A DNA stretch of 64,000 bases, taken from the sequence record OZ196593.1, one strand, 5' to 3'. The translations under genes and the position numbers were made by a program. The notes under the pieces were generated by a model. It saw only the letters and a program-made list of their open reading frames with translations. It was not told the DNA's origin and made no database searches. This document shows, one piece after another, positions 36,451-49,387 of this stretch. Position 1 is the first letter of the stretch; each line of letters begins with the position of its first letter.

Positions 36451-36464
36451 TGAAAATCACATAT
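36443..36464. promoter_or_regulatory. CRP box (perfect core)
   Basis: AAGTGTGATGAAAATCACATAT: TGTGA-N6-TCACA centred about -60.5 from the estimated start of the promoter at 36479. Confidence 0.7.
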
Positions 36465-36472
36465 TAAATATA

Positions 36473-36507
36473 CAGGGGTTGCATTGCAGCCCCTTTAACT
36501 GTAAGAT
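36473..36507 (+). promoter_or_regulatory. Hairpin-embedded sigma70 promoter
   Basis: AGGGGTTGC-ATT-GCAGCCCCTTT holds TTGCAT (36479)-17-TAAGAT. Confidence 0.75.
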
Positions 36508-36540
36508 GTATTCAGTTACTTAATTCAAGGGAATAAAACA

Positions 36541-37968
36541 ATGAAAAAACTAATTTTAGCATCAGTTGTTTCGACATTCATCTTAGCCGGTTGTGGTGGC
36601 GGAGGTTCTGAGGGTGATTGTGGCGATTGCAACGCACCTGATCCAACACCAACAACTACGATCACTGGTAAAGTGATTGATGGTTACGTGTCTGGTGCGA
36701 CAGTCTTCTTAGATTTGAACGCAAACTCTGAGCTAGATAGCGGTGAGCCGTCAACTGTGACTCAAGCAGCGGGCGCGTACTCATTAGATTTGAACAGTGA
36801 TCAAGACGCATGTGTTGGCTATGTTCCAATCGTGACTCACGTTCCAGTCGGTGCGATTGACTCTGACTACGGTGAAGTTACAGAAGCTTATACGATGGTT
36901 ACACCGCCAACGTTTGAGCGCGACGAGCCGCAAAACGTCACACCACTGACTACAATGGTTTGGCAAGAAGCAATTTCTGGTCTAGAAATGGATCACTCTC
37001 AAGCATACGCAAATGGCGGGTGTCAAGAGATTGCACAAAACGAAGAGCTTTACAATGAGCTTTCAACTCAACTTGACGCGTCAGTTATCGAGTTTCAACG
37101 AGCTTACAACATGACAGAAGAAGAAATCTTCTCTGATTATGTTGCACGTGGTGACGTTGAAGCGCACGCACTAGCAGCCGCAGCGGTTGAAGGTTTTCAA
37201 CGTGCTTATGCTGAACGCGCAGTCATGATTGAAGAAGGTAAGCACGTGTGGGCACACATGTATACGTATGTTGAACAAGCGAATGCAAACACGCGTAACG
37301 CTAACCCGTATTCATGGAAACTTCATACTGGTTATAGTGAAGATTTGAGTGCTGATTCTGCACGAACTTACTCAGAAATCACGCTAGTTGATGATCTTGA
37401 TGCTCCGATTAACACGTATGTTATCTTTGCAACTGACGTACTTGACGACAAAGTGACACTTGAAACATACGACCGCGTTGCTGTGAGCACTGGTTTCATC
37501 ATCGATGATAACGTATGTAAAGGTTCAGTTGGATTTGATGCACATGATAAACGCGGTGAAGCAACATACTACCGTCGCATGGCAACTGGTCATCTAGTCG
37601 ATTCAGTTCAAGCATGTGCTGATAGCTACGACACTACGCTTACTAACGACTCAATCGAGCAGTCTTCTAATCTAGAATACTTCTACATGGGTTCAGAGAT
37701 TGGCGGTTCGCCTGCAATGGCTTACGACATCTACGACGTTGACGGCATCATCGGTGAGCTTGACAACTGGTACATTGGTTACTATCAAGTTGATACTGAA
37801 ATGCCATTCGCAGACTGGTGGAGAAAGGGTGTACGTCTTCCTGAGAACGACTTGATGACTGAACACACTCGTGACATCGACGGCTACGAAGAAACAACAA
37901 TCTGGTACAACGACGGTACATACGAGCGTACTTGCTTTGTTGACAGCGTACCAACAACATGTAAATAA
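36541..37968 (+). CDS. Large acidic lipoprotein with bacterial-type N-terminal beta-sandwich
   Basis: Lipobox FILAGC followed by GGGGS; ITGKVIDGYVSGATVFLDLN.N..LD.GEP...T...G.Y pattern. Confidence 0.8.
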   Translation: MKKLILASVVSTFILAGCGGGGSEGDCGDCNAPDPTPTTTITGKVIDGYVSGATVFLDLNANSELDSGEPSTVTQAAGAYSLDLNSDQDACVGYVPIVTHVPVGAIDSDYGEVTEAYTMVTPPTFERDEPQNVTPLTTMVWQEAISGLEMDHSQAYANGGCQEIAQNEELYNELSTQLDASVIEFQRAYNMTEEEIFSDYVARGDVEAHALAAAAVEGFQRAYAERAVMIEEGKHVWAHMYTYVEQANANTRNANPYSWKLHTGYSEDLSADSARTYSEITLVDDLDAPINTYVIFATDVLDDKVTLETYDRVAVSTGFIIDDNVCKGSVGFDAHDKRGEATYYRRMATGHLVDSVQACADSYDTTLTNDSIEQSSNLEYFYMGSEIGGSPAMAYDIYDVDGIIGELDNWYIGYYQVDTEMPFADWWRKGVRLPENDLMTEHTRDIDGYEETTIWYNDGTYERTCFVDSVPTTCK

Positions 37969-37978
37969 CACGATATTG

Positions 37979-38001
37979 AAAGCTCCTTCGGGAGCTTTTT
38001 T
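37979..38001 (+). terminator. UUCG intrinsic terminator
   Basis: AAAGCTCC-TTCG-GGAGCTTTTTT. Confidence 0.9.
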
Positions 38002-38003
38002 CG

Positions 38004-38032
38004 TTTATAGTGTCGTATAAACATAGTACAAT
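38004..38032 (+). promoter_or_regulatory. Promoter region of the radical-SAM operon (late-like and/or sigma70-like)
   Basis: TATAAACA at 38016-38023 (7/8 to T4 late TATAAATA); also TTTATA-17-TACAAT. Confidence 0.45.
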
Positions 38033-38047
38033 GATGATGAGGTGAAT

Positions 38048-39271
38048 ATGAAAACTGGAAATATACGTACTGAAGACGACCCAATTTGTTTAGCGCCATT
38101 TGTAGGCTTGTTTAGCGCGCCTGCTAGAATGTCGCCGTGTTGTGAAATGGTTCACGACGGCTATAAAGACTTAGACGAAATGTGGAATAGTGATTTGATG
38201 AAAGGTCTACGAAAGAGCTTCATCAACGGTGACACTGAAAACATACCGAACTACTGCAAAGACTGCTTAAAGTCTCCAACGTCACATCGTGACTATTACT
38301 ATCTACCTGACCGGTCTTACTACAAAGAGACGTTTGAAAAATACAAGCACAGCGTGCTAGAAGATGGCACGATGACTGAAACTCCAATTTCATATCTTGC
38401 AATCGGTGTTTCGAACAAGTGCAATCTCGCGTGTCGTATCTGTTACCCAGGTATCAGCTCGAAACGTCAATCTATCGCTGAGTCAATCGGTGAAATCTCT
38501 GTAAAAGAACTGCTACCGAGCTTAGTCGATGAAAAATACGAAGCGGACAACGAACTAGATTACGAGAAGCTTCTAATTGAGCACTCAGACACGCTAGACG
38601 AGGTTGTAATACATGGCGGTGACCCAACGCAACACAAAGATCTTCCGTTTCTTCTAGACCTCTTAGAGAAGCATTTAAAGCCCGATTGTAAAATCAGCTT
38701 CTTGTCGAACGGTACATTTAGAAAGTGCATTGACGGTGAAGTAATCTGGGACAAGCTGCGTCGCTTCAAAAATCTGCATGTTGTGTTCAGCATGGACAGC
38801 ACGAAAGAAGTGAACGAGTACAGTCGTACGGGATTGAAGCATGACAGACTAGTGAAACTCATTTGGGAAGCTAAAGAAGCAATCCCCCATGCATACATTG
38901 GGTGTCACGCGACGTTGAACAACATGACCGTAGTTCGATTTGCTGAGTTCTTAGCGTATTACGAGAAAGAGTTTTTCGACAGGGGTGTGTGGTTGAGCTG
39001 TAACGTAGTTAACGGCCCAAAAGAATACAGCCCGTGTAACTTGCCTGTTAAGCTGCGTGCTCAAGTAATGATGGACTTGCATAAACTGAAGTTCGACCAC
39101 TGGCATATGGAAGAAATGCGACAATGGGCTATCAAAGCTGTGACGTTGCAACCATTTGATCAGCATCTTTGGAACAAGTTCTTAGTGAAAGAACAGAAGA
39201 TGGACAAACTTGTTGGCGATGACATGTTCGCTGTCTTGCCTGAATTTAAGGAATATCAATGCATAATGTAG
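38048..39271 (+). CDS. Radical SAM protein 1 with N-terminal twitch/SPASM-like Cys domain
   Basis: CLAPF..SPCC..CKDC; CNLACRIC; HGGDPT; SNGT; FSMDS. Confidence 0.92.
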   Translation: MKTGNIRTEDDPICLAPFVGLFSAPARMSPCCEMVHDGYKDLDEMWNSDLMKGLRKSFINGDTENIPNYCKDCLKSPTSHRDYYYLPDRSYYKETFEKYKHSVLEDGTMTETPISYLAIGVSNKCNLACRICYPGISSKRQSIAESIGEISVKELLPSLVDEKYEADNELDYEKLLIEHSDTLDEVVIHGGDPTQHKDLPFLLDLLEKHLKPDCKISFLSNGTFRKCIDGEVIWDKLRRFKNLHVVFSMDSTKEVNEYSRTGLKHDRLVKLIWEAKEAIPHAYIGCHATLNNMTVVRFAEFLAYYEKEFFDRGVWLSCNVVNGPKEYSPCNLPVKLRAQVMMDLHKLKFDHWHMEEMRQWAIKAVTLQPFDQHLWNKFLVKEQKMDKLVGDDMFAVLPEFKEYQCIM

Positions 39272-40194
39272 TGTTTATTTCAAGTATAGGTGATGCAGAA
39301 TATCATTCGATTGGTCGCGTGTTGATTGAATCAATTCGTTATAATTCTCCTAACCCGAATTATGATTTAGTGTGGTTCATGGATGGTGAAGAAGTTGATA
39401 TGTCAGACGTTGATTGTATAACTGAGCGGGTTACCGCGCCGGTTATGCCGAACCCATTTAATTACCCAGATACGTTTGTGTCTGGGTGTGCGATGAAAAT
39501 AATATGTGCTGAATACCTACAACAGCGCGGTTATAAACGCGCAGTCTCTATTGATTTCGATACGATAGTGAACATAGATTTGAATGCATTATTTGATCTT
39601 GACATGAACGACATTGAAATCGCAGGTGTTTCTGGTTGCGGGTGTGCGATGTTCAGTCATTATAGTGAAAAGCTGCCAAAGATCAGGGACATTGGTGATA
39701 CGACATCGAACCCTGACATGTTTTGCAATAAGCCCGAGACCGATGAAGCAATATGTAAACGAAAGTTTAATGGTGGGTTGTATGTATTCAATATGGACAT
39801 GTGTGTGTTCAATGATTACGTTGAGTTGTATAAGAGCAACCCGATGAGAAATAATGACGAGGATTATGTGGAGCGCACGTTCACGAAGAAAATGATGCTC
39901 CCGCGTGAGTTGAATTACTTTGTGTTGTTTGGGGATCAGTTAATCAGACAGAACCCAGCTCTATACAAAAAAATTAACCACGACGCGTATAGCGCAAGTA
40001 TTATGCACTATCAGTATGTTTCTAAGCCATTTCATTTTGAAGGGCCCGGGAATCTGAACAATGAGCTTCATAGTCCGGTTAAGTATTTTAAATATTTTGA
40101 CCGAGTTCGTGACAAAATGCCCGACGTGTTTTGTGACAATGTTGATGCTTTCAAACGCTATTATAATGATGAACTGATAATGAGGTTGCGATGA
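39259..40194 (+). CDS. Glycosyltransferase family 8-like (GT-A)
   Basis: SIDFDTIV (DxD), FNGGLYVFN, IMHY...KPF. Confidence 0.85.
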   Translation: MHNVVFISSIGDAEYHSIGRVLIESIRYNSPNPNYDLVWFMDGEEVDMSDVDCITERVTAPVMPNPFNYPDTFVSGCAMKIICAEYLQQRGYKRAVSIDFDTIVNIDLNALFDLDMNDIEIAGVSGCGCAMFSHYSEKLPKIRDIGDTTSNPDMFCNKPETDEAICKRKFNGGLYVFNMDMCVFNDYVELYKSNPMRNNDEDYVERTFTKKMMLPRELNYFVLFGDQLIRQNPALYKKINHDAYSASIMHYQYVSKPFHFEGPGNLNNELHSPVKYFKYFDRVRDKMPDVFCDNVDAFKRYYNDELIMRLR

Positions 40195-41351
40195 AATGTA
40201 CATTACCATTTGATGGTTTTTTCGTAAACGCGATGGGAAAATTTTCCCCGTGCTGTGCGTTGTCTGTAATGAACGAAGACAGCAACGAGGAATCATCTAT
40301 CACGATTGACATGGATGGTGATTTCATAAATCACGAACGCATGGTCGAGCTACGCAAAGAACATGCAAGTTGTGATATCAAAAATCAGACATGCATCGAC
40401 TGCATCGCGAGATATAAAGGTAGTGACACGTTTAATAGTGATTTGGTGAGTGGTGAATTGCCTGACACATATGACGCAGACACGGGTCGAATATCAACGC
40501 CAGATTTCAAACATTTGAATGTCGCGTTTAGCAATCGCTGCAACTTAGCATGCCGTATGTGTTCTTCGATGAACTCTAATAAGTTTGGCGAAATGATGCA
40601 CAACAAGATTCGATTACAAGACATTATCTACTTGTCTGATCAGTGGTATAACGAAGAAAATCCAGGTAAAGTAAACAACGCATTTGATGATGATAGTCTC
40701 GGGTACTTAATAGAACATAGCCAGAACACTGACACCATAACTATTCATGGCGGTGAACCCTTTCTCGAACCGAGAGTCGTGCAGTTCCTTGATTCTGTGA
40801 AGAAAACGAAGAAGTTATACATCACAACTAACGGAACTCGTAAACCAAGGCAAACTATAATCGACGCGATTAATAATAACAACTCAGGTATAATGTTCAG
40901 CATCGAGGGTACGAAAGATGTACAGGAATATGTTCGAATCGGATCGAAGATGAGCGACATTTGGGATAATATAGCTTACATACGAGAGAAGTGCCCGAGT
41001 GCTGAGTTTTACACGAATACGGTTGTCACTGCGTACAACTGGCTAGATCTGGCTGATTTCATTCGTTTAGCACCTGAGTTTTCGAAGTTCGGGGTGGTAA
41101 ATATGTTCCTTGATTGGAACGCCACATATAGCCACATTGATTTCTTTCATGTTCTGAGCGAAGAAGATTTCAATGAGGGTAAGTCTAGACTTACTAGAGT
41201 CATGTATGATATACATCACATGGATATCCCAGAACGTCTAAAGCAGTCATGTAGAAAGTCAGTTCAGCAATTCGTTCATGCTAAATATCAACCAAATGAA
41301 CGTCTAAAAGGTCACTTTAATGAGTACAATAAACAAGTCGATGATTTGTAA
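40191..41351 (+). CDS. Radical SAM protein 2 (same architecture)
   Basis: CTLPF..SPCC..CIDC; CNLACRMC; HGGEPF; TTNGT; FSIEG. Confidence 0.92.
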   Translation: MKCTLPFDGFFVNAMGKFSPCCALSVMNEDSNEESSITIDMDGDFINHERMVELRKEHASCDIKNQTCIDCIARYKGSDTFNSDLVSGELPDTYDADTGRISTPDFKHLNVAFSNRCNLACRMCSSMNSNKFGEMMHNKIRLQDIIYLSDQWYNEENPGKVNNAFDDDSLGYLIEHSQNTDTITIHGGEPFLEPRVVQFLDSVKKTKKLYITTNGTRKPRQTIIDAINNNNSGIMFSIEGTKDVQEYVRIGSKMSDIWDNIAYIREKCPSAEFYTNTVVTAYNWLDLADFIRLAPEFSKFGVVNMFLDWNATYSHIDFFHVLSEEDFNEGKSRLTRVMYDIHHMDIPERLKQSCRKSVQQFVHAKYQPNERLKGHFNEYNKQVDDL

Positions 41352-42450
41352 AGCACCGTTCACGTCTCAAGTAGTGTGGACTAGTGGCGAAGTTCAGATG
41401 TGTTGTAATGATCAGCCGAGTGAAAAGCAATACAGCTTAGAAGATGAATGGAACAGTGAGTCGCGCAAACAAGCACGACGTGAATGGTTGTCGGGTGAGA
41501 TTCCCGACCGTTGTAAGTCATGCGTGAAGCGTATGGAATCTGGTGATGCTACTCTCCCTGTTTGGTATGACAAGATCATCGAAACAGTTGAGCTAACCGA
41601 AGAAGTATCAATGCCTGTTTATCTGCATATGAGTCCGTCGAATCAGTGCAATCTCGCGTGTCGCATGTGCAACGGTGAGATATCAAGCACGTATGACAAA
41701 CTGATATGTGATTCATCGAATGGCGAACGACACAATGACATCGTTGAATATGTGAAGAAATGCTTGCCAAAGCTTGAGCACTATGTTTTTCACGGCGGTG
41801 ACCCGATGTTCTACAAAGACTTTCTTCGCGTTGTCGAAGTGCTGAAAGGGCGTAAAGATGATTTGTACATCAACGTAATCACGAACGGCACGCATCACAA
41901 GTCAGATGGCGTTGATATGATACCGCATTTGAAAGAGTTCAAGAACTTGAAAGTGACGTTTTCGATTGACAGCATCGGCAAGTACAACGACTACATGCGT
42001 ACTCTGACCAAGACGAGTCGCGTTGTTGACAACTTCAATAAATGGTGTCGCGAAGTTCCTCATGCAGAAATGTCTATACACACCATAACGACGAACATTT
42101 CTTCGCTCGGTATCGTTGAGCACTTGCGCAATATATACAACAGCGATATGTTTGACCGAGTTGATGCGTTCAGTCATTTCATGGTTGACTGGCCAGTTGA
42201 ATATCGCGTACACAATCAACCACCTGCGATGCGTCAGCGCGTGCTAGATAGCATCAATGAATTTCGCGATGAAGTCGAATCGTATATCGGTGCAGATATT
42301 GAAACTGCTAAGAACATTCTGATTAATATTGAGCGACAATTCGAACGACCATTTGACATTAAAGAATGGGCAATGTTCTTGAAGAAGAACAAAGAACACG
42401 ATGTACTGAGTAAATCAGACACGAGTATAATTGAAATTATGAAGGTCTAA
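41320..42450 (+). CDS. Radical SAM protein 3 (start may be 41341)
   Basis: CKAPF..QMCC..CKSC; CNLACRMC; HGGDPM; ITNGT; FSIDS. Confidence 0.92.
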   Translation: MSTINKSMICKAPFTSQVVWTSGEVQMCCNDQPSEKQYSLEDEWNSESRKQARREWLSGEIPDRCKSCVKRMESGDATLPVWYDKIIETVELTEEVSMPVYLHMSPSNQCNLACRMCNGEISSTYDKLICDSSNGERHNDIVEYVKKCLPKLEHYVFHGGDPMFYKDFLRVVEVLKGRKDDLYINVITNGTHHKSDGVDMIPHLKEFKNLKVTFSIDSIGKYNDYMRTLTKTSRVVDNFNKWCREVPHAEMSIHTITTNISSLGIVEHLRNIYNSDMFDRVDAFSHFMVDWPVEYRVHNQPPAMRQRVLDSINEFRDEVESYIGADIETAKNILINIERQFERPFDIKEWAMFLKKNKEHDVLSKSDTSIIEIMKV

Positions 42451-42451
42451 A

Positions 42452-43537
42452 ATGAAGAAAATTGGGATTATGATTGACGGCTATTTTGTGTCGTCTGGTT
42501 CTGGCATTAATACGTACGTACGTCACTTGTGTCAGACGCTGATTAAAGATCTTGGTTATGATGTGACGCTGTTCGTCGATACTCCGATTGAAGAGAAAGT
42601 GAGTCTCAATCAATACAACAAAATCGGTGTGAATATCGTGAACGCAAACGAGAACTATCGCGTGCGTACGTTCACTGCGTCATTCGAAGAGAATCACGTA
42701 GCTAGAGTATTCAAAGACATTTGTCAACCGTGGGTCGATGAGCATAAGCCAGTCGCGATGATTTCTCATAGCTACGGAACTGCTCTTGCTGTGCGCGACT
42801 TAGAGTTCGATGGTAAGAAATGCATCGTCACTCATATCGGTGATGTAATGGCGCCTGACTTACCCGACTTGTGGGACTTTGAAGATCATACAGTGCGCAG
42901 CTTCTTGCAATCGCTTGACAATAACGACATTGATTTGGTGTGTCAGACAGAAGGGATTGTGGACAATCATCTTAAAGTGCTGAAGAATCGCGACCGAAAG
43001 AGTTGTATTGTGTGTCATGAACCATTTCACGTTGCGATTGACCGACAGCTTAGACCTGTTCGTGAGGGAGCGATTGTAGTGGCGGGTAATTACAAGCGTA
43101 AGCGACTGCACGACGTGATCGATGTGTGCGCTAAAGCTGACATACCCTTGACGATAATCACGGGCGATAAGACGGGTTACGGCGAAGATTTAGACATGTA
43201 TTGCATCAAGCAAAAGGTTCGATACAACATCATCGAGAAACTAGCGAACGATTTCGTTGTTCCTCAGATTAGAAGTCATCGAATCATGATTCACTTGAGC
43301 GACATTGAAGTGTGTCCGTACAGTGTAATCGAAGCGATGCCGTACGTGCATTGTTTAGTGAAGAAAGGCGCGCCGTGGACTCACAAGTTTTACCCTGAAT
43401 ACACGACGCGAATCGATTTAGATGACATAGACATCGTAAAAGATGCCTATGAGAATTACGACAAGTACGAGACAATGGATCTCGCTGAGTATCAGAAGTC
43501 AGTTAACGACTCATGGGAAGCTTACTTGAGTTCGTGA
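42452..43537 (+). CDS. GT-B fold glycosyltransferase (GT4-like)
   Basis: N-terminal GSGINTY..L...L...GYDVT; C-terminal E-X7-E (IEVCPYSVIEA). Confidence 0.75.
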   Translation: MKKIGIMIDGYFVSSGSGINTYVRHLCQTLIKDLGYDVTLFVDTPIEEKVSLNQYNKIGVNIVNANENYRVRTFTASFEENHVARVFKDICQPWVDEHKPVAMISHSYGTALAVRDLEFDGKKCIVTHIGDVMAPDLPDLWDFEDHTVRSFLQSLDNNDIDLVCQTEGIVDNHLKVLKNRDRKSCIVCHEPFHVAIDRQLRPVREGAIVVAGNYKRKRLHDVIDVCAKADIPLTIITGDKTGYGEDLDMYCIKQKVRYNIIEKLANDFVVPQIRSHRIMIHLSDIEVCPYSVIEAMPYVHCLVKKGAPWTHKFYPEYTTRIDLDDIDIVKDAYENYDKYETMDLAEYQKSVNDSWEAYLSS

Positions 43538-44784
43538 AGTTCATCTTGAAGTTTGAAAAGGGCGATTAGATTATCGTCCTTTTCTTTTAAGTGCGTTGAG
43601 TAATCGCCTGTCCAAAACTCACAAGCTGAAACCGCAGCTTGATACACAAAGTTTTCCAATTCACCGTAGCGTTCTGCATACGGTTCCAACTCATCAATGA
43701 GTATTTTCAAACGTCGTACCGTGTCATCTAGAACTTCTGGTGCGAGATCTTCGACAATCAGCTCTGGTCTACCCGTCACATATTCAAATGAACAGCAATT
43801 CACACCCATATCTTTATACTCAGTCAATATTTCGCGTAGAAACTCTGGCATATGCGGGTATGTGATGCGTGTAACGCACGCTGCGATGTTGTAACACACT
43901 TCAGGGTTGTAAGCTATGTATTCACGCAAATTCTTCTTCACGTGCTCTGTGTTCGTTCCTAGACGCTGGTAGTCATTTATCTCTGCAATCGAATCGATGC
44001 TGAAATTCACGACATGTAAGTTGGGTTGGTCAAGCATTGTTCGAATACGGTCATTCAGCTTGATCGTACCATTCGTCACGACACCAATTTCACTTGTGCT
44101 TTCAACGATGAAATCAATCGTCTTGTTATTCATCAATGGCTCACCGCCAACTACCGATGTGATCGTGTGACTGTCAGTGTATTTGTGAATCGTAGATGGG
44201 TTGATTTCTTTCTCAAGTGGCACGAAACATGCTTCGACGGAATTCAATTTCTCGCTTTGTTTACGAGCAGTCGGATGTTTGTCGTATTTCTTGCGAATCT
44301 TATTTGATGCATATGAATTACACATGCGGCATTCGAGGTTACAATTACTGCCGAAACTGATTACATTGTTTTTCAGTTTGACGTTTGTATTGTCGTAATC
44401 CCATGAACCATCTTCGCCAGTCTCAACGAAAATATCTTCAGCATCTTGACCGCGCAATAAACGCAATCGACTTCGATGTTCTTTTGACACTTCATCACAG
44501 AAAACAGTTTTACCCCGAGTTTCGATACACTGAGCGCACACTTTATTCATCGGCTGTTCGCCAATCATTTGCAAGCGTAGATTTTTCATCGCTTTTGTGT
44601 TCATATCTTTGTTGAGTTCGAAAGGCGTGTCGTCGTAGACATACTCAGGGTCGAGTTCTTTCATGTGAGCTGACAGCCAACAACAAGGGGCGATTTCATT
44701 GTTCGCCCCAATTTGCAGACCAGCCCAGGGATAGTGACACGGAACCGTATCAGGAATTTGTGGCGTGGCGTATGTGTTCTGCAT
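43522..44784 (-). CDS. Radical SAM protein 4 (same architecture)
   Basis: CHYPW..APCC..CAQC; CNLECRMC; GGEPL; TNGT; FSIDS. Confidence 0.92.
   Translation of the reverse strand: MQNTYATPQIPDTVPCHYPWAGLQIGANNEIAPCCWLSAHMKELDPEYVYDDTPFELNKDMNTKAMKNLRLQMIGEQPMNKVCAQCIETRGKTVFCDEVSKEHRSRLRLLRGQDAEDIFVETGEDGSWDYDNTNVKLKNNVISFGSNCNLECRMCNSYASNKIRKKYDKHPTARKQSEKLNSVEACFVPLEKEINPSTIHKYTDSHTITSVVGGEPLMNNKTIDFIVESTSEIGVVTNGTIKLNDRIRTMLDQPNLHVVNFSIDSIAEINDYQRLGTNTEHVKKNLREYIAYNPEVCYNIAACVTRITYPHMPEFLREILTEYKDMGVNCCSFEYVTGRPELIVEDLAPEVLDDTVRRLKILIDELEPYAERYGELENFVYQAAVSACEFWTGDYSTHLKEKDDNLIALFKLQDELHELK
43556..43588 (+). terminator. Terminator of the plus-strand operon, inside the 3' end of the convergent gene
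   Basis: AAAAGGGCGAT...ATCGTCCTTTTCTTTT. Confidence 0.6.
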
Positions 44785-45763
44785 ATTTTTTATCTCTCAT
44801 TTCAATAATATTTTCAAGTAACTCTAGGTGCTCTGCATTGCACATTTGACCTAGCAGTCTTTCATCGTCTTTGAGATATTTAATAAGCAAAGAAAAGTCG
44901 GCACAGAATATACCCTGTCCCAATCGATGTAGAGGTACACCAATCTGCATTTCTTTTTTCACACGCTCGAATTGATAGTGGAAGTATTTTTGTTCATACA
45001 GATACTGAACGATTCGACGGTCTTCTGTGTGATGACGTGTCAATTCGCGAATGAAATCTTCTTCAGTTTCCATATGGTTTAGATGTGTCCACGTACGTAT
45101 GTTGTACGCGTTACTGATCACTTTGAAATTGCCATTGATCATGATGTTCAAGAACTCTTGATCACAATATCGTTGATAGTACAAGTCGCACCACATTCTG
45201 AAATCTGGTAGATTCAGCTTGCGCCATTCTGCACAGTCAGCAACAACAAGCCCTGCATTGAACGTCATCGGTACTGATTTAAGTAGCGCGATGAACTTTT
45301 CGCTTGCATCGGGGTGATCTAGATTGCGCCAGTAGTCATAATGACCGTCCATGCCGAAATCTTTATGCCAATCCATGTTACTTGCCATCGGTTTACCCTC
45401 AAGATCGCAAGTCACTAACTCGTCAAGATTGCCACACGCAACCATATCTAAGTCGAAGTAGATGGCGCGTTCATATTTCCCCTCACGAGCTGCGTGCTCT
45501 AATGAGTCAGGACAAAGACTGAACGCAGGTAAAGCAAACGCTTGATCCCCGTCTAATCCCTCAAGATCATGTTTCGGTAGTTCGATGATCTCGACTGGGA
45601 ATTCATCTATAACACATGGTACAGTTTCAGCATCATTCGTGTACCAACGATAATCAACGTCTTCAGTAATATTGTCATGAATTGAGCGAAGTACGATATT
45701 ACCCCACTTCGCATAGTCAATGTTTTGGTTACTGGTAGCGACGTACACTACGCATTTAGCCAA
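44750..45763 (-). CDS. Glycosyltransferase family 8-like (GT-A); TTG start after GGAG RBS
   Basis: YFDLDMV (DxD), FNAGLVVAD, DQEFLN, AYN motifs. Confidence 0.85.
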   Translation of the reverse strand: MAKCVVYVATSNQNIDYAKWGNIVLRSIHDNITEDVDYRWYTNDAETVPCVIDEFPVEIIELPKHDLEGLDGDQAFALPAFSLCPDSLEHAAREGKYERAIYFDLDMVACGNLDELVTCDLEGKPMASNMDWHKDFGMDGHYDYWRNLDHPDASEKFIALLKSVPMTFNAGLVVADCAEWRKLNLPDFRMWCDLYYQRYCDQEFLNIMINGNFKVISNAYNIRTWTHLNHMETEEDFIRELTRHHTEDRRIVQYLYEQKYFHYQFERVKKEMQIGVPLHRLGQGIFCADFSLLIKYLKDDERLLGQMCNAEHLELLENIIEMRDKKYAEHIRHATNS

Positions 45764-46835
45764 TGTATTTCTCCCAAGGTGAAGCATCCCACGAAGAGCG
45801 TACTTCTTTTTCAGAAACAGAGAACGTGTCAACGGTCTCAATCAAAACGCCAAGAACTTCAACGGGATCGCTGTAATCTGAAATGTCGATTACTGAATCT
45901 TTGTCAAGGTCGATGTCAGCGCCTTTCAAAATGTATTTGTACGAGTCGATGACGTTTTCAGATACCGATTCGATGTTGTGCAAGTTGTAGTCGATAACCA
46001 TTGCAGCTTCACACAAGTCTTTCACTTCAGATGAATCAATAGTCGTGATGATATCGATTTTGAAACCAAGCGGTGCGACCGACTGTAGAATCGAATCAAG
46101 CTCGTCTTTCTGATTACACACAATGCCCAATGAGTTCGTGTTGATGACGCTTACAAGGTCATACAGCTCGATAAATTCACGATTTACGATATCATTCAGC
46201 TCTGGACGAACGTTGTCGATGTACAGTTGAGAATGGGGAATCGACCAAGTGATATTTTCAAGGTCATTTGTACACTTGCCGCTGAAGCTCAAGCACTTCT
46301 TATCAGTCCCGCCAAGCTTATTGATCATGTGATCTGCTTGCTCAGAGAATGACACGAATGTTTGAATGCTACCAAAGTCAGCCGTTTCGTCAGTCAACCC
46401 GTCGAAAATAAATGCTGTTTTGTACTTTGATGATAGATGACGCACAAGCGTATCTTCGCGCAGCGGTGCAAGTAAGATAATCTTTTTGAAGTTCAGACGA
46501 TTCAACGAGTTTACCGAAAGCTGTAGTCGTGAAATATCGCGCACAGCGTCTTCGTAGTTCATCGTATCATCAACCATAATCGCGATTGTCGAACCGTCGA
46601 TATCAACATTGGTATCTTCTTCACGAATTCGAAGCAATCCCCATTCGAATTCAATCTGTTCTTTCGTAACTTCGATGATGTTGTCAAAGCTGTCTTTCAG
46701 TGTTGCGCACTTAGCGTCAGCGTCACACTCAAGCACTTCATACGTGCGGTCATCGGGGTCAAGTGAAGACACGACATAAAGCATTTTCTCTTGAAAATAC
46801 TTCGGATTGTCGCGCAGTTCTTTAATCGTTATCAT
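45756..46835 (-). CDS. Acidic hypothetical protein, possibly a degenerate Rossmann/GT-A-like fold
   Basis: 359 aa; alpha/beta pattern TIAIMV...LSVNSL..KKIILL; coupled to both neighbours. Confidence 0.6.
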   Translation of the reverse strand: MITIKELRDNPKYFQEKMLYVVSSLDPDDRTYEVLECDADAKCATLKDSFDNIIEVTKEQIEFEWGLLRIREEDTNVDIDGSTIAIMVDDTMNYEDAVRDISRLQLSVNSLNRLNFKKIILLAPLREDTLVRHLSSKYKTAFIFDGLTDETADFGSIQTFVSFSEQADHMINKLGGTDKKCLSFSGKCTNDLENITWSIPHSQLYIDNVRPELNDIVNREFIELYDLVSVINTNSLGIVCNQKDELDSILQSVAPLGFKIDIITTIDSSEVKDLCEAAMVIDYNLHNIESVSENVIDSYKYILKGADIDLDKDSVIDISDYSDPVEVLGVLIETVDTFSVSEKEVRSSWDASPWEKYIG

Positions 46836-47509
46836 GTTTTAATCCTATTTTTGAACACAAGTGACATGTAAGAGTATGAACCCGAAATGCCGCCTGTCTG
46901 ACTGCCATAACTATTTGATACTGTGCCTAACGACGCGCCACTTTTGTAACCTGCTAGAGACGTGCTTGTTGTATTGAACACAGCGTAACCAGAGTTTGCG
47001 TGATAAATGTAGTAGTACACTCTATATAGTGTCGCAGTACCGTACCATGCACCCCATGATGGGTAACGACCACTATCCATTAGACCTTTAACAGCAGCTA
47101 AGTTTGTGCTTCCGTCTTTCACGTAAGCCCACGTGTTGTAGCCGCCACTCGCCCCTGATACTGTAATTGAACGACTTGTGTTGTTATTGATCCATGAACC
47201 AACTGGTGCATAGTAGAACGTACCGTCGATGTTATCGTAACGTTTCGTCGTGAACTGAAAACGTACTTGAATCGCGTCCATCCAAAGACCGTGATTGTCG
47301 CTCGTAGCTGAACCGGCTAGGTTGTACATTGACACTGCGCCATTGTCTGGCATTAGTGTATCGCCGTTCGTACCCCAGTATGTGTAACGCGGCAATTGAT
47401 TGGCAGTTGAAACCGACTGAGTTGACGTGTGTACTTGACGGTAGTTGCTCAATGCAGTTCCGTAGTTCTTACACCAAGCGTCACGAATCGCTGTAATTGA
47501 AACACTCAT
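46832..47509 (-). CDS. Late Gly/Ser/Thr/Tyr-rich protein; putative tail-fibre adhesin or virion appendage
   Basis: Composition; P..GAVSMYNLAGS resembles the N-terminal attachment motif of gp38-like adhesins; perfect late promoter upstream. Confidence 0.55.
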   Translation of the reverse strand: MSVSITAIRDAWCKNYGTALSNYRQVHTSTQSVSTANQLPRYTYWGTNGDTLMPDNGAVSMYNLAGSATSDNHGLWMDAIQVRFQFTTKRYDNIDGTFYYAPVGSWINNNTSRSITVSGASGGYNTWAYVKDGSTNLAAVKGLMDSGRYPSWGAWYGTATLYRVYYYIYHANSGYAVFNTTSTSLAGYKSGASLGTVSNSYGSQTGGISGSYSYMSLVFKNRIKT

Positions 47510-47554
47510 TATTAATGTCCTCAGTGTTTAAAATTGAAATAAGTAGCTATACAA

Positions 47555-47562
47555 TATTTATA
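47555..47562 (-). promoter_or_regulatory. T4-type late promoter
   Basis: TATTTATA on plus = TATAAATA on minus, 45 nt upstream of the 47509 start. Confidence 0.75.
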
Positions 47563-47584
47563 GTTAACACATAGCGAGAAAATC

Positions 47585-48055
47585 ATGAGAAATTATAGCG
47601 ATCTACTGTTCAACGTACTGACGAATGGTCGTCCAGTATCAAATACTGAAATTCAATTGCAAGGCGTTACGTTTGAACACAGCGCGCCACACGCCCCAAT
47701 CACGTGCATGTTCGATCATGAGATCAAGTTCGAAGAAGATGAAACTCACGTAATCGATATGATTGACGAGTTGACCTATGTCAAGCAAGTCGGTGTTGTG
47801 TCGCCTTTACAGATGTATATTGAGACTGTTCACGGCTACTTAAATACACTGTATCGCTCACAAAAGACTGGACAGCCAGTCGGTCGCATCGTCATTCAAG
47901 CTGAAGCAGTTGAAGTTAAGCGCGAAGACATGGACGCGTATTTGAATATCATCGGTAAAGAAATGGTGTTCGGGCCGCGTCTTGAAGGGTCGCCAGTAAC
48001 GGCAGAATTCGTTGACGGTGAGCTGAAATTAAACAACTTCAATATCATTGGGTAA
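47585..48055 (+). CDS. Truncated or degenerate thymidylate-synthase-fold protein
   Basis: YSDLLFNVLTNG resembles the TS N-terminus; QKTGQPVGRIVI and GPRL...NFNIIG resemble the TS C-terminus; catalytic PCH absent. Confidence 0.45.
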   Translation: MRNYSDLLFNVLTNGRPVSNTEIQLQGVTFEHSAPHAPITCMFDHEIKFEEDETHVIDMIDELTYVKQVGVVSPLQMYIETVHGYLNTLYRSQKTGQPVGRIVIQAEAVEVKREDMDAYLNIIGKEMVFGPRLEGSPVTAEFVDGELKLNNFNIIG

Positions 48056-48060
48056 AATAA

Positions 48061-48510
48061 ATGAAAAAACTTCTTGCAATTGCTGCAACAGCACTGCTAT
48101 TATCAGCTCCAGTTCAAGCAGATGACATTTCGCTTCACATCGGGTCATATACACATGCGTGGGATGACGACCGAATGAACGAACAGTCATTTAACATCGG
48201 TGGTCGTTATGAAGACTTCGCGTTCGGTTACATTGATCGCAACGTCTTTGACAATCACAGTGTTTATGCTTATTGGAACCCTCGCGTTTACAAGTCAGAA
48301 CATTTCGACTTCGGCTTTGCACTTGGTGCACAGACGGGTTGGGAAGATGACGCTTGCTACGACGGCTGGGGTTATGAAGACAAATTTACAATCGGTGATC
48401 ATATTGCACCGCTAGTTGGTCTGACAGCAGAAGCTAAAGTCGGTGACGTTGGCATTGAAACTGTCATCACGCCTATGCTAGTGCGTACAAACTTTGTGAT
48501 TCACTTCTAA
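48061..48510 (+). CDS. Secreted small outer-membrane beta-barrel, PagP-like
   Basis: Signal peptide (VQA/DD), alternating beta strands, H..D..R.NE...GG and FDFGFALG motifs, C-terminal Phe. Confidence 0.55.
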   Translation: MKKLLAIAATALLLSAPVQADDISLHIGSYTHAWDDDRMNEQSFNIGGRYEDFAFGYIDRNVFDNHSVYAYWNPRVYKSEHFDFGFALGAQTGWEDDACYDGWGYEDKFTIGDHIAPLVGLTAEAKVGDVGIETVITPMLVRTNFVIHF

Positions 48511-48520
48511 GGGTGAATAA

Positions 48521-49327
48521 ATGGAGCTAACAGAATCGATTACAGTTCATGGTCGAGCGTTGCACACTGAGAAAGCGGTTGGGGTGATTTTACACCCCGC
48601 TGAACACGGCATATCATTTACGATTAAAGGGGCTACTTTTCATAGCTCGTCGCGCTCAACCGTTTCGAAAGAACTATGTTCGATGATGATGTTTGATATC
48701 AAACGTCATGTTCTGACGTACGAACATCTTTTAGCTGCACTGAATCAGTTGCACATCCCGAACATTCGCATTGAATTGCTTGATGGTGCAACTGAACTGC
48801 CAATTCTTGACGGTTCCGCTCAGGGTTGGGTTGATTTGTTGAAGTACAACATCAAGTCGATGGGGCAGACTAAATTTAATCAGATTAAATTAATCAAGCC
48901 TGTTACTGTGCGCGATGGCGATGCGTATATCATTGCGCTACCGTCACGTGAGCCGGTTTACTCGTACGAGCAAAACTTCGATCTTCACGCGACTCAAAGC
49001 ATGACGAGAATGAAAATGTTCAACTTGTCTCGCGGTGATTGGTTTGATATCATGGCTGAACCGACGATTACCGTCGAAGGCATGGGCAACGAGCACAAAT
49101 ACAACACTGGTTTTTCGAATTACATCTCCGACGAAAGCACGTCGTGCCATCGCGACTCGCTTGTAAATCACAAGTTACTAGACTTGATCGGTGATACGTA
49201 CGCAAACGGTATGCGCTTAATCGCAGACATCGAAGCGTACAAAACGGGTCATTCGCATAACAACATGTTGATGCGAAAGATATTGAGTGATGAGACGAAT
49301 TACATCATCGTTCAAAAAGAAGTTTAA
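48521..49327 (+). CDS. lpxC: LpxC-family Zn-dependent deacetylase
   Basis: G..LHT.K, TYEHLLAAL, ELPILDGSA, NHKLLDLIGD, AYKTGH..N: all catalytic and Zn motifs present. Confidence 0.9.
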   Translation: MELTESITVHGRALHTEKAVGVILHPAEHGISFTIKGATFHSSSRSTVSKELCSMMMFDIKRHVLTYEHLLAALNQLHIPNIRIELLDGATELPILDGSAQGWVDLLKYNIKSMGQTKFNQIKLIKPVTVRDGDAYIIALPSREPVYSYEQNFDLHATQSMTRMKMFNLSRGDWFDIMAEPTITVEGMGNEHKYNTGFSNYISDESTSCHRDSLVNHKLLDLIGDTYANGMRLIADIEAYKTGHSHNNMLMRKILSDETNYIIVQKEV

Positions 49328-49387
49328 CAGCAACAAAAACTGACTCATAATAGAGTCTCAATCAATCGCATATTTGGGGAGTCCATC

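Follow-up and report, generated by a model that had tools for sequence, protein, structure and literature searches.

The 64-kb window analysed here belongs to Vibrio phage K566, a KVP40-like Schizotequatrovirus, and contains nine genes (g1 to g9) that are a horizontally mobile accessory cassette of two converging operons (Table 1). Seven of the nine products belong to enzyme families and have intact motifs: g1, g3, g4 and g6 are radical SAM enzymes with an N-terminal twitch domain, while g2, g5 and g7 are glycosyltransferases or resemble them. Our tentative preference is for a cassette that assembles a glycan, modifies it by radical chemistry and has a late phage protein as its target.

Table 1. 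Features of the cassette, its island and the related trio (window positions).
Feature	Coordinates	Strand	Description
Replacement island	36453..49362	none	12.9 kb, 13 genes, VPK566_0302 to _0314; contains the cassette
Predicted lipoprotein	36541..37968	+	475 aa; island gene, outside conserved cassette
Terminator-like hairpin	37978..37999	+	9-bp stem, then T run; closes upstream gene
Candidate sigma-70-like promoter	38004..38032	+	g1-g5 operon; TTTATA, 17-nt spacer, TACAAT; consensus match only
g1	38048-39271	+	N-terminal-twitch radical SAM enzyme, 407 aa
g2	39259-40194	+	GT8 glycosyltransferase, 311 aa
g3	40191-41351	+	N-terminal-twitch radical SAM enzyme, 386 aa
g4	41320-42450	+	N-terminal-twitch radical SAM enzyme, 376 aa
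g5	42452-43537	+	GT4-like GT-B glycosyltransferase, 361 aa; paralogue of conserved phrog_27514 gene
Terminator-like hairpin	43555..43584	+	12-bp stem, then TTTT; just past g5 stop, inside g6 3' end
g6	43522-44784	-	N-terminal-twitch radical SAM enzyme, 420 aa
g7	44750-45787	-	GT8 glycosyltransferase, 345 aa counted from annotated ATG
g8	45756-46835	-	Orphan acidic protein, 359 aa
g9	46832-47509	-	Orphan Ser/Thr/Gly/Tyr-rich beta protein, 225 aa; heads minus-strand operon
T4-type late-promoter motif TATAAATA	47555-47562	-	45 nt upstream of g9 ATG
156-aa orphan gene	47585..48055	+	Divergent from g9; travels with cassette
Secreted PagP-like protein	48061..48510	+	149 aa; island gene, outside cassette; phrog_3600 at 1e-13
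LpxC-like deacetylase	48521..49327	+	268 aa; island gene, outside cassette; Pfam LpxC 1.3e-40
Conserved paralogous trio	54360..56690	-	Outside island; GT-B 55668-56690, 89-aa acidic protein 55415-55684, N-terminal-twitch radical SAM enzyme 54360-55415

Organisation of the cassette and its island

On the plus strand, g1 to g5 are coupled by overlaps of 13, 4 and 32 nt and then a 1-nt spacer, and on the minus strand g6 to g9 overlap by 35, 32 and 4 nt. The operons converge at g5 and g6, which share 16 bp (43522-43537). These coordinates agree with the preliminary description, made from the sequence, of nine tightly coupled genes in two converging operons. The late promoter claimed there was also found: the single exact copy of TATAAATA in the 64 kb precedes g9, which heads the minus-strand operon, and a GAGGA ribosome-binding site lies between motif and start codon. 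One-mismatch variants of the motif are depleted in the window (26 observed vs 60.5 +/- 7.8 expected). The candidate promoter of the plus-strand operon, downstream of which lie GAGGTG and the g1 start codon (ATG, 38048), is sigma-70-like and not late, which we count against a late-protein target.

The cassette forms the core of an island seen in K566 and K567 only. By blastn, 97-98% identity to sister-clade phages stops at 36452 and returns, at 99.4%, at 49363. The island stands in place of a KVP40-type island with QueC-like and radical SAM genes. PMC12028318 (2025) describes replacement at this locus, labels the K566 island an "anti-defence island" without dissecting its genes, and mentions one of its GT8 genes. 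The earlier suggestion of an undescribed system therefore holds in part: that paper already mentions the island and one GT8 gene, and a curated family (NF033640) exists for this type of radical SAM enzyme, but neither has been characterised.

Radical SAM enzymes

The products of g1, g3, g4 and g6 all match Pfam Radical_SAM and, over their full length, the NCBIfam model NF033640 ('twitch domain-containing radical SAM protein', cut-off 170 bits), with scores of 202, 154, 193 and 142 bits, respectively; g3 and g6 thus fall under the cut-off. In each, five cysteines arranged as C-x16-17-CC-x35-47-CxxC precede the CN(L)xCR(I/M)C motif, and a GG(D/E)P motif is present. Residues 16-86 of g6 also match the Pfam SPASM profile (E 0.004). 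Pairwise BLASTP E-values of 6e-35 to 7e-12 identify the four as true paralogues and, together with the NF033640 alignments and the cysteine pattern, bear out the original proposal of four paralogous enzymes with a Cys-rich, twitch-like N-terminal domain. The NF033640 family is curated but uncharacterised. Its bacterial members, mostly from Bdellovibrionota, have neighbours without glycosyltransferase enrichment, so the family is not intrinsically devoted to sugar chemistry; this too is counted against the reading we favour.

Among solved structures, the closest matches to the radical SAM core are the peptide-modifying SPASM/twitch enzymes CteB, SkfB, YydG and anSME, and BtrN, BlsE and viperins, which act on carbohydrates or nucleotides, score about equally. 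Prokaryotic viperin structures are among these matches, and Table S8 of PMC12028318 marks g3 and g6 'Defense?', with DefenseFinder pVip E-values of 6.8e-12 and 3.2e-08. Nevertheless, it is very improbable that the four enzymes make or destroy modified nucleotides for defence or counter-defence. The curated model NF038283 gives them 23-50 bits against a cut-off of 180, whereas NF033640 matches each of them along its full length at 142-202 bits. The similarity is confined to the common radical SAM core, viperins do not have the N-terminal Cys-rich domain, and such a role would not account for three glycosyltransferase genes coupled so tightly to the radical SAM genes.

Glycosyltransferases

Both g2 (32.6 bits) and g7 (47.3 bits) exceed the gathering score of the Pfam GT8 family (PF01501, 24.3 bits) and keep the DxD motif, at residues 99 and 112, respectively, as expected from the preliminary description of two GT8 genes. 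They are 25% identical and have GT8 motifs in common. The sole PDB match of g2 is the O-antigen enzyme WbbM (E 0.004), and the sole NCBIfam match of g7 is an LPS 3-alpha-galactosyltransferase. The third glycosyltransferase, g5, matches phrog_27514 over its full length (3.8e-17) and carries an E-x7-E motif at residues 286-294; its best solved-structure match is the GT4 enzyme WaaB, an LPS galactosyltransferase (E 0.017). The motif and the WaaB match speak for the single GT-B gene proposed earlier, but the match to Pfam Glyco_transf_4, the GT4 N-terminal domain, is under threshold (E 8e-4). By sequence, g5 is a putative GT-B enzyme of the GT4 type, with weaker support than the GT8 genes have and matches under curated thresholds, a point that we also set against the favoured reading.

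Recurrence in other phages

All KVP40-like phages conserve a trio of genes to which the radical SAM and GT-B genes of the cassette are paralogous; its arrangement is the same in KVP40.0274/.0273/.0272 and D482_0335/_0334/_0333. In the window the trio matches phrog_27514 at 1e-182 and phrog_14086 at 1e-162, and its radical SAM enzyme scores 135 bits on NF033640. In the three annotations inspected, those of KVP40, D482 and the K566 window, GT-B and radical SAM genes share one three-gene unit. A g5-type GT-B gene is present in 40 of 50,697 phage records, every one of them Schizotequatrovirus-like, and a g4-type radical SAM gene in 41, of which 40 are Vibrio phages.

The same linkage occurs on scaffold_535 and on the metagenomic contig L005. 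The terminase of scaffold_535 is nearest (54%) to those of Rak2/Munch-like jumbo phages, and the core of the cassette (radical SAM genes, GT-B, g8, g9 and the 156-aa gene) keeps its convergent layout there. Homologues of the 156-aa gene, g9 (36%), g8 (33%), g6 (50%), g5 (52%), g4 (58%) and g1 (54%) are present; that of g6 converges with the GT-B (g5) homologue with a 13-nt overlap, and past the g5 and g4 homologues come further radical SAM genes and the g1 homologue. Orthologues of g1, 54% identical, were found on two metagenomic contigs. On L005, the gene directly before the GT-B/radical SAM block has a Peptidase_S74 tail-fibre chaperone domain at its end. The GT8, LpxC-like, PagP-like and lipoprotein genes were not found beside the cassette in other phage contigs. 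Of the radical SAM-GT8-GT4-adhesin pattern suggested earlier for a neighbourhood search, linkage of radical SAM, GT-B, g8 and g9 recurs on scaffold_535, but the GT8 genes do not.

The orphan proteins and possible protein maturation

The composition of g9 (23.6% Ser+Thr, 10.7% Gly, 9.8% Tyr, 4% acidic) is unlike that of all other products of the cluster; the protein is Trp-rich, with one Cys and no signal peptide. It has no match in Pfam, PHROG, NCBIfam or PDB, and at long range it matches a single protein, of RTX type and 3903 aa, in the cadherin-like repeats. A beta-sandwich is predicted for residues 79-220 (pLDDT 55, pTM 0.60), and Foldseek with this model returned nothing at E <= 0.001 in PDB or BFVD. 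The term adhesin-like, applied to g9 previously, suits the Ser/Thr-rich composition and the RTX-type match, but not the family and fold searches. Homologues of g9 number four small proteins among 1.84 billion representative proteins. One holds the position of g9 on scaffold_535, and two are encoded in bacterial genomes, on small resolvase-flanked islands where neither radical SAM nor glycosyltransferase genes are close by, so g9 can exist apart from the enzymes. These bacterial homologues and the empty Foldseek search both count against a late-protein target.

No family match (Pfam, PHROG, NCBIfam) or PDB match was found for g8. Its only homologue (33%) is found at the equivalent place on two contigs, scaffold_535 being one, and the AlphaFold2 model of g8 is unusable (pLDDT 31). 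The homologue of the 156-aa gene (25% identical, E 3e-12) lies in the same divergent position beside the g9 homologue on scaffold_535.

Since g9 travels with the enzymes and heads an operon whose last gene encodes a radical SAM enzyme, the twitch enzymes could instead act on g9 or another protein, introducing RiPP-like cross-links or epimerised residues, with sugars added later. The peptide-modifying relatives of the radical SAM core, weak NCBIfam matches to cyclophane- and thioether-forming maturases, and the Tyr and Trp content of g9 all fit such a role, and the 4-7 tandem paralogous radical SAM genes per phage contig are typical of multi-site maturation. We nonetheless regard it as unlikely. 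g9 is a folded-looking beta protein of 225 aa with one Cys rather than a leader-core peptide, and homologues without a radical SAM gene beside them conserve its aromatic motifs just as well. A RiPP recognition element, a peptidase and an exporter are all absent, and the non-peptide enzymes BtrN, BlsE and viperins match the core about as well as the maturases do.

Host envelope, DNA and small molecules as possible alternatives

GT8 and GT4 are classic LPS-core enzyme families, and envelope-type genes adjoin the cassette; both facts weigh against a late-protein target. The glycosyltransferases may instead add sugars to the Vibrio LPS core, lipid A or another membrane glycolipid, which the radical SAM enzymes would tailor, acting jointly with the LpxC-like, PagP-like and lipoprotein genes of the island. 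The altered cell surface might then block superinfection or prevent progeny from re-adsorbing to debris. The WbbM, WaaB and LPS 3-alpha-galactosyltransferase matches point in this direction, as do the neighbours themselves. The LpxC-like protein scores 115 bits on TIGR00325, under the cut-off of 187, but its catalytic residues are intact: the Glu-His pair, the His..Asp pair and the late His align with those of solved LpxC structures. The PagP-like outer-membrane protein carries a signal peptide and has no Pfam or NCBIfam match. The lipoprotein begins with a signal peptide and a Leu-Ala-Gly-Cys lipobox; it has no family match (Pfam, NCBIfam, PHROG) and no homologue beside the metagenomic cassettes. 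PMC12028318 places the glycosyltransferase among lipid A genes, and in a pelagimyophage study (PMC7029224) O-chain modification is the role ascribed to GT8 genes and radical SAM cassettes close to tail fibres. A host-surface role is thus stronger than the preliminary description implied; we treat it as the chief rival reading and consider it possible, if on the doubtful side. Against it, other phage contigs have neither the envelope genes nor either of the GT8 genes beside the cassette, yet keep g8, g9 and the 156-aa gene; the KVP40-like trio has no adjoining LPS gene; and none of the nine product translations contains a signal peptide or obvious membrane segment. Half of the cassette appears to be late-transcribed and the latent period of the phage is 30-40 min, which is short for newly made LPS to arrive at the cell surface.

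T4 DNA is glucosylated by GT-B enzymes, and the glycosyltransferases and radical SAM enzymes might likewise decorate phage DNA bases to evade restriction, but GT8 is not known as a DNA glycosyltransferase family. The QueC-like and radical SAM genes of the replaced KVP40-type island could serve base modification, and the published anti-defence label would fit. We rate this explanation as highly unlikely, given that the island has no kinase, base-exchange or nucleotide-metabolism gene by Pfam and NCBIfam and that neither gene 42, for dCMP hydroxymethylase, nor gene 56 has an allele in KVP40 or nt-1 (PMC2993671). Hydroxymethylase and glucosyltransferase terms are absent from the available part of the K566 gene table in PMC12028318, and a paper on glycosylated 5-hydroxycytosine in viral DNA names neither Vibrio phages nor radical SAM enzymes.

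A free pseudo-oligosaccharide or glycolipid-like metabolite, with no macromolecule decorated, would be a most surprising product. The analogy is with aminoglycoside pathways, which have GT4, deacetylase and twitch radical SAM steps: the PDB matches include BlsE and the butirosin-synthesis enzyme BtrN, a twitch radical SAM protein; the island holds both a GT4-like enzyme and an LpxC-like deacetylase; and on a related marine contig the gene for an N-terminal-twitch radical SAM enzyme is linked to a carbamoyltransferase and a QueC-like gene. However, an aminotransferase, a cyclase, a sugar-nucleotide synthesis gene and an exporter are all absent by Pfam and NCBIfam, the deacetylase is not kept with the cassette, and the retention of g8 and g9 would be left unexplained.

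Proposed pathway and comparison with known systems

Glycan building with radical tailoring remains the most economical reading of a cluster in which GT8 and GT4-like genes are so tightly joined to the genes for four radical SAM enzymes. The anatomy on which the preliminary description based this pathway was correct; the virion or late-protein target gains indirect support. That support comes from the sole exact late-promoter motif in the window, which belongs to g9, from an unrelated jumbo-phage contig, where g9, g8 and the 156-aa gene accompany the enzymes with order and convergent layout unchanged, and from the position of the L005 version directly after a tail-fibre gene.

In the pathway proposed here we infer the chemical steps, the substrate, the timing of expression and the status of g9 as a virion protein. 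Glycan assembly would be cytoplasmic. The GT4-like GT-B enzyme g5 would start or extend a sugar chain from nucleotide sugars, to which, in K566, the GT8 enzymes g2 and g7 would attach further sugars. With SAM, the canonical [4Fe-4S] cluster and a second, auxiliary cluster at the N-terminus, g1, g3, g4 and g6 would each perform a different hydrogen-abstraction step on the sugars or the acceptor, candidates being epimerisation, oxidation, deoxygenation and C-C/C-X bond formation. The most probable destination of the product is a late phage protein. We regard g9, which is probably expressed late, as the likeliest acceptor, though another late or virion protein may serve, and g8 and the 156-aa neighbour may be accessory factors. 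Comparable systems are known: in streptococci, GT4 and GT8 enzymes O-glycosylate serine-rich adhesins in the cytoplasm, and mycobacteriophages (genome notes such as PMC11256854) glycosylate their capsid and tail proteins.

Genomic setting of the cluster

The window is identical to sequence of Vibrio phage K566 (OZ196521.1, 254,938 bp) and of its twin K567. K566 is a KVP40-like Schizotequatrovirus with seawater and oysters as its source (PMC12028318). Small early-region genes on the plus strand make up the majority of those in the window, whose GC content varies little (0.40-0.46). The preliminary description delineated a convergent nine-gene cluster, designated g1 to g9, and ORF calling and the record annotation both agree with it on the nine ORFs and where they lie, on the change of strand and on the 16-bp overlap at which the two operons meet (see the table). 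Within each operon, adjacent genes overlap by 4-35 nt or are separated by a single nucleotide, without exception. Mechanical ORF calling and the record differ in two starts, GTG 38042 versus ATG 38048 for g1 and TTG 45841 versus ATG 45787 for g7; the annotated ATG codons agree better with the ribosome-binding site and with the way the genes overlap.

Megablast and blastn searches of 50,697 phage records with the cluster returned no DNA relatives beyond K566 and K567. In blastn alignments the sister clade of 15 phages shares 97-98% identity with the window up to position 36452 and 99.4% from position 49363, with nothing aligning between. Since identity breaks and returns at these two points, the cluster forms the core of a replacement island 12.9 kb long, spanning VPK566_0302 to VPK566_0314. 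The island sits in the early-gene region beside nadV, outside the tail-fibre module. At the same site KVP40 and the sister phages encode QueC-like and NAPRT-like proteins and two convergent, overlapping radical SAM enzymes. These gene pairs overlap by 8 nt (locus L002) and 25 nt (locus L098), so convergent overlap of this sort recurs across different islands. On a marine contig, too, an N-terminal-twitch radical SAM gene is linked to genes for QueC, a thioredoxin and a carbamoyltransferase. The island region is flanked by two phrog_8733 paralogues (E ~1e-74 each) lying about 18 kb apart.

Coordinates of the cluster, its neighbours and related features in other sequences
Feature	Location	Strand	Remark
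phrog_8733 paralogue	34979-35671	+	upstream flank of island region
475-aa lipoprotein with Leu-Ala-Gly-Cys lipobox	36541-37968	+	island gene
g1-g5 operon	38048-43537	+	g1, g3, g4 radical SAM; g2 GT8; g5 GT4-like GT-B
Convergent overlap	43522-43537		16 bp
g6-g9 operon	43522-47509	-	g6 radical SAM; g7 GT8; g8, g9 orphans
Late-promoter motif	47555-47562	-	45 nt upstream of g9 ATG
156-aa orphan	47585-48055	+	island gene; divergent from g9
PagP-like protein, secreted, 149 aa	48061-48510	+	PHROGs label only, 1e-13
LpxC-like deacetylase	48521-49327	+	island gene
phrog_8733 paralogue	53495-54283	+	downstream flank of island region
Fifth radical SAM copy	54360-55415	-	part of the trio
Trio: GT-B, 89-aa acidic protein, radical SAM	54360-56690	-	outside island
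Convergent radical SAM pair	L002 12004-14110		KVP40/sister-clade site
Convergent radical SAM pair	L098 5448-7471		KVP40/sister-clade site
LPP20-like lipoprotein with lipobox	L004 7594-8223		scaffold_535
Tail-fibre/tailspike C-terminus with Peptidase_S74	L005 2-592		upstream of GT-B/radical SAM block
g9 homologue	L010 10001-10660		36% identity; bacterial genome
g9 homologue	L011 9233-9877		28% identity; bacterial genome

Several neighbours of the cluster within the island resemble envelope proteins. The relevant entry of a published table names the 475-aa lipoprotein a 'Hep Hag repeat protein', after eggNOG (PMC12028318). The PagP-like protein has no match in Pfam or NCBIfam. The LpxC-like protein scores 140 bits against 27 with Pfam, but 115 against 187 with TIGR00325. 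Its Glu-His pair, His-x3-Asp pair and late His align with the catalytic and zinc residues of solved LpxC enzymes, and the alignment ranges indicate a shorter protein that stops before their C-terminal tail. Among the 50,697 records labelled as phage, the gene is found in K566 and K567 only, three other matches appearing to be bacterial; a literature search found no paper on a phage-encoded LpxC.

Radical SAM enzymes

Pfam identifies g1, g3, g4 and g6 as radical SAM proteins, each carrying the N-terminal Cys-rich domain attributed to it earlier. All four align end to end with NF033640 ('twitch domain-containing radical SAM protein', N_Twi_rSAM), scoring 202.2, 154.3, 193.1 and 142.4 bits, respectively, and the fifth copy outside the island also matches it at full length (135.4 bits). 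The curated cut-off of this family, 170 bits, is reached by g1 and g4 only. As g3, g6 and the fifth copy match the model throughout and score below this value, they are best called divergent relatives of NF033640. The four cluster enzymes are paralogous, as had been claimed, with 24-28% pairwise identity and E-values down to 6e-35.

In all five copies, five cysteines (C, CC, CxxC) precede the CxxxCxxC core, and the core is accompanied by the SAM-binding motif GG(D/E)P. C125, C129, C132, G190 and G191 (g1 numbering) are invariant in an alignment of 17 sequences. The Pfam SPASM profile aligns to residues 16-86 of g6, and the C-terminal region of NirJ2 to residues 11-75 of g3. The N-terminal twitch, or half-SPASM, domain is predicted to bind an auxiliary [4Fe-4S] cluster; a PDB homologue search found no solved structure covering it. 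Together, these motifs support SAM-dependent radical chemistry with an auxiliary cluster as the likely activity of g1, g3, g4 and g6.

The nearest solved radical SAM cores belong to the peptide maturases CteB, SkfB, YydG and anSME, and the match is limited to the core. BtrN, BlsE and the viperins, which act on sugars or nucleotides, score similarly, again over the core only. The cluster enzymes do not qualify as SPASM-type RiPP maturases, their auxiliary domain being N-terminal and half-sized rather than C-terminal with two auxiliary clusters. All equivalog RiPP-maturase models scored far under their cut-offs, and neither a short precursor-like ORF nor a peptidase is annotated in the cluster. 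We regard direct maturation of the g9 protein by these enzymes as unlikely, and production of a free metabolite by the cassette as more improbable still. The entries concerned in Table S8 of PMC12028318 mark the cluster radical SAM genes 'Defense?' on weak pVip matches. Viperin identity was rejected, the proteins scoring 23.2-49.8 bits on NF038283 against an equivalog cut-off of 180 with similarity restricted to the radical SAM core, and viperin-like chemistry is accordingly very improbable.

Word-index searches with g1 alone or with the 17-sequence alignment gave very few matches. One of them, P0010, has a RiPP-like context and 38% coverage and was set aside. No paper on the function of NF033640 was found in a literature search. 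Cellular relatives, sampled through the common motif CNLACRMC, come mostly from MAGs of the predatory Bdellovibrionota, often with 2-10 paralogues per locus among largely unannotated neighbours. The neighbourhoods of such genes were compared at 57 bacterial loci. Apart from one B12-binding radical SAM family, the gene families that keep appearing beside them lack Pfam matches, and no relative of g5, g8, g9 or the GT8 proteins is among them. That N-terminal-twitch radical SAM paralogues repeatedly occur in batteries is a new observation. Examples among loci L015-L091 (such as L065, L029 and L019) include 10 radical SAM profile matches within 16 kb of a Chloroflexota MAG, seven of them above 120 bits. 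Another battery comprises seven such profile matches in a Bdellovibrionales MAG, and some adjoin the B12-binding radical SAM family.

Glycosyltransferases

The assignment of g2 and g7 to GT8 holds, with PF01501 scores of 32.6 and 47.3 bits, respectively, against a gathering score of 24.3. Their DxD motifs are DFD at residue 99 (g2) and DLD at residue 112 (g7), followed in both by FN(G/A)GL and HYQ. The designation of g5 as a GT-B enzyme stands in part. Its best glycosyltransferase score, on the curated domains Glyco_transf_4 and Glycos_transf_1, is 19.9 bits against a threshold of 28.5, and none of the five members of the g5-family alignment reaches the GT1/GT4 cut-off. All five conserve E286-x7-E294 in the C-terminal domain. 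Compared with solved structures, the g5-family profile aligns weakly over this region to WaaB (E 0.017) and BshA (E 0.34), and the depositor's note on the KVP40 orthologue cites PF00534. g5 is thus only weakly recognisable as a GT4/GT-B enzyme. Taken together, these features support nucleotide-sugar-dependent glycosyl transfer as the probable activity of g2, g5 and g7.

The acceptor could in principle be DNA, for whose glycosyl decoration by a phage the glucosylation of T4 DNA is the precedent. KVP40-type phages lack genes 42 and 56 (PMC2993671), and we consider DNA hypermodification scarcely credible.

The orphan proteins g9 and g8

The preliminary description called g9 adhesin-like. The composition of the protein suits that label: it contains 23.6% Ser+Thr, 10.7% Gly, 9.8% Tyr and 4% acidic residues, unlike all surrounding products. 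It has no signal peptide and no repeats, and searches of Pfam, PHROGs, NCBIfam and PDB sequences and a PDB profile search gave no match. An AlphaFold2 model predicts, with modest confidence (pLDDT 55, pTM 0.60), a beta-sandwich over residues 79-220, for which Foldseek found nothing at E <= 0.001 in the PDB and BFVD (TM-scores ~0.1-0.2). With a surface-like composition but no adhesin domain in Pfam, no repeat architecture and no significant fold match, g9 may fairly be called adhesin-like in composition and not as a family assignment.

When 1.84 billion representative proteins were searched exhaustively with HMMER, four homologues of g9 emerged. Three are small (210-219 aa). The fourth is a 3903-aa RTX-type protein with 32 cadherin-like repeats and RTX repeats, which match g9 residues 64-151 with 30% identity and a summed E of 4.8e-22 over the repeats (phmmer). 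A word-index search with g9 returned only itself, tblastn of g8 and g9 against phages found nothing outside K566 and K567, and scans of IMG/VR with g9, g4 and the g1- and g5-orthologue alignments gave no matches. Two homologues (L010 and L011) are encoded in bacterial genomes, in small, resolvase-flanked, phage-like islands, each at the end of a run of small same-strand genes. One of these genomes is evidently Vibrio-type, having an HlyU gene close by. Both islands lack radical SAM and glycosyltransferase genes, and the genes surrounding the homologues match only PHROGs of unknown function.

g8 is an acidic protein of 359 aa with one homologue. Its single-sequence model (pLDDT 31) is unusable and a PDB profile search was empty. 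A relationship of g8 to either glycosyltransferase family was rejected, hhalign probabilities being below 1% against both GT-B and GT8.

The late promoter previously ascribed to g9 is present as a motif. The sequence TATAAATA, the 8-nt late-promoter consensus of phage T4, lies upstream of g9, and the exact motif is unique in the 64 kb. Counted with its one-mismatch variants, it is strongly depleted in the window (26 observed versus 60.5 +/- 7.8 expected), a pattern that would fit selection acting against stray late promoters among early genes. Ahead of the g1-g5 operon lie a terminator hairpin and a match to a sigma-70-like promoter.

Recurrence of the cassette in other phages

A smaller set of related genes, the trio, is conserved throughout the KVP40-like phages. 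In KVP40 it comprises KVP40.0274, KVP40.0273 and KVP40.0272, encoding a phrog_27514 GT-B protein, an acidic protein of about 90 aa and a phrog_14086 radical SAM protein, respectively. In KVP40, in D482 and in the K566 window the three genes are translationally coupled. The two enzyme families of the trio occur in about 40 Schizotequatrovirus records: among the 50,697 phage records searched, g5-type GT-B genes are present in 40, from Vibrio phages, and g4-type radical SAM genes in 41, of which 40 are from Vibrio phages. g5 matches phrog_27514, and g1, g3, g4 and g6 match phrog_14086; the cluster therefore contains paralogues of both enzyme families, adjacent and translationally coupled as in the trio. 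Unlike the trio, the cluster encodes four radical SAM enzymes and, in addition, two GT8 proteins, g8 and g9, arranges its genes as two convergent operons and does without the 89-aa protein; its identity to the trio is only 20-31%. The cluster represents a paralogous expansion of this conserved radical SAM/GT-B module, a relationship that is new.

A closer counterpart is found on scaffold_535, a 28-kb metagenomic contig (ENA ERZ23498523; loci L004 and L008) whose terminase is closest to those of Rak2/Munch-like jumbo phages (54% identity). A divergent homologue of the 156-aa gene (25%) is followed by homologues of g9 (36%), g8 (33%) and g6 (50%), which meet the g5 (52%) and g4 (58%) homologues from the opposite direction, overlapping by 13 nt. 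Beyond the latter come a further three radical SAM genes, an orphan of 627 aa and a homologue of g1 (54%). Gene order, orientation and the convergent GT-B/radical SAM overlap are thus those of K566 at 25-58% identity, whereas the contig encodes six or seven radical SAM enzymes, no GT8 protein and the extra 627-aa orphan, and has another phage backbone. Just upstream of the cassette, this contig carries genes for an unrelated LPP20-like lipoprotein with a lipobox and for GroEL.

On another metagenomic contig (L005), a GT-B relative and then four radical SAM genes directly follow a gene with a C-terminal Peptidase_S74 chaperone domain, and a further contig has seven tandem radical SAM genes. The set that travels together comprises the radical SAM and GT-B genes, g8, g9 and the 156-aa gene. 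Judged by these homologies, the cluster is a mobile cassette that a distant phage lineage also carries, and two orphan proteins accompany the enzymes; both points are new.

These contigs also bear on the main rival reading, remodelling of the host envelope. GT8 and GT4 are LPS-core families, envelope genes adjoin the cluster, and pelagimyophage genes of similar type have been read in this way (PMC7029224). However, the LpxC-like, PagP-like and lipoprotein genes and GT8 are exactly the parts not kept with the cassette, having no homologues on the other cassette-bearing contigs, and envelope remodelling is on balance unlikely. Were LPS the target, the enzymes would form, with the LpxC-like protein, an unusually complete phage programme of host-envelope remodelling.

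Proposed function

We tentatively favour a cassette that builds and tailors a glycan on a late phage protein, with g9 the obvious candidate, though this falls somewhat short of being probable. It is favoured because it is g8, g9 and the 156-aa gene that are retained together with the enzymes, because g9 combines a late-promoter motif with a surface-protein-like composition, and because one relative of the cassette adjoins a tail-fibre gene. We hold it no more firmly since two g9 homologues reside in bacterial islands devoid of such enzymes, the plus-strand operon does not resemble a late one, and the modified protein is deduced from genes. If the target is a phage protein, virion glycosylation would extend to T4-like phages of Gram-negative hosts, with radical chemistry in addition.

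A more specific version, in which g9 is a late or virion protein and four to seven N-terminal-twitch radical SAM enzymes install radical-derived changes on it or its glycan alongside GT4/GT8 glycosylation, is doubtful. If true, it would constitute a kind of modification not yet seen in viruses, the first function for NF033640 and the first case in which a structural protein of a phage is matured by radical SAM enzymes.

The cluster was put forward as an undescribed system. Since the island and one glycosyltransferase have already been mentioned in the literature and the radical SAM type belongs to a curated family, it is not categorically new, while its links to the conserved module and to the mobile cassette are. 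Batteries of paralogues coupled to glycosyltransferases and two orphans, and moved between distant lineages, supply candidate substrates for the NF033640 family, namely g9, a nucleotide sugar or LPS. Replacement of the island marks the origin of the K566/K567 subclade, which has switched receptor from OmpK to LamB and has a narrower host range (PMC12028318). Given this coincidence, the function of the island bears on the adaptation of large marine phages.

Comparison with known systems

All cluster enzymes and the fifth copy share with the NF033640 family a Cys-rich, putative auxiliary-cluster domain that precedes CxxxCxxC. The bacterial members differ in being mostly from Bdellovibrionota and in having other neighbours.

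The cluster appears to combine the same two families as the LPS outer-core glycosyltransferases (GT4 WaaB/WaaG and GT8 WaaI/J/O/R), and its best named matches are to WaaB and to an LPS 3-alpha-galactosyltransferase model. These matches are weak (E 0.017 and 2.8e-6, respectively) and far under the equivalog cut-off, and the cluster has no waa-type heptosyltransferase, kinase or ligase. Radical SAM enzymes are not known to belong to LPS-core pathways.

The serine-rich repeat adhesins of Gram-positive cocci are O-glycosylated in the cytoplasm by GtfA/GtfB (GT4) and then by GT8 enzymes. The K566 cluster similarly sets a putative GT4-type initiator and several GT8 extenders beside a Ser/Thr-rich, surface-like protein. 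It differs in that the adhesins are unrelated in sequence to g9, which has no repeat array, in lacking an accessory Sec system, and in its radical SAM enzymes, which the adhesin system does not have.

In mycobacteriophages, capsid and tail proteins are glycosylated by phage glycosyltransferases. Such virion glycosylation is reflected in PMC11256854. The likeness to K566 is that phage-encoded glycosyltransferases are proposed to decorate structural proteins of the phage; the hosts, glycosyltransferase genes and lineage are different, radical SAM enzymes are not involved, and the K566 modification is putative.

The T4-like pelagimyophages and cyanomyophages are marine phages that, like K566, have GT8 genes and variable radical SAM cassettes (PMC7029224). 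g4 and g5 have no detectable sequence relatives in cyanophage or pelagiphage records. The cassettes of those phages occupy the host-recognition cluster, a hypervariable region near the tail fibres, whereas the K566 island lies beside nadV.
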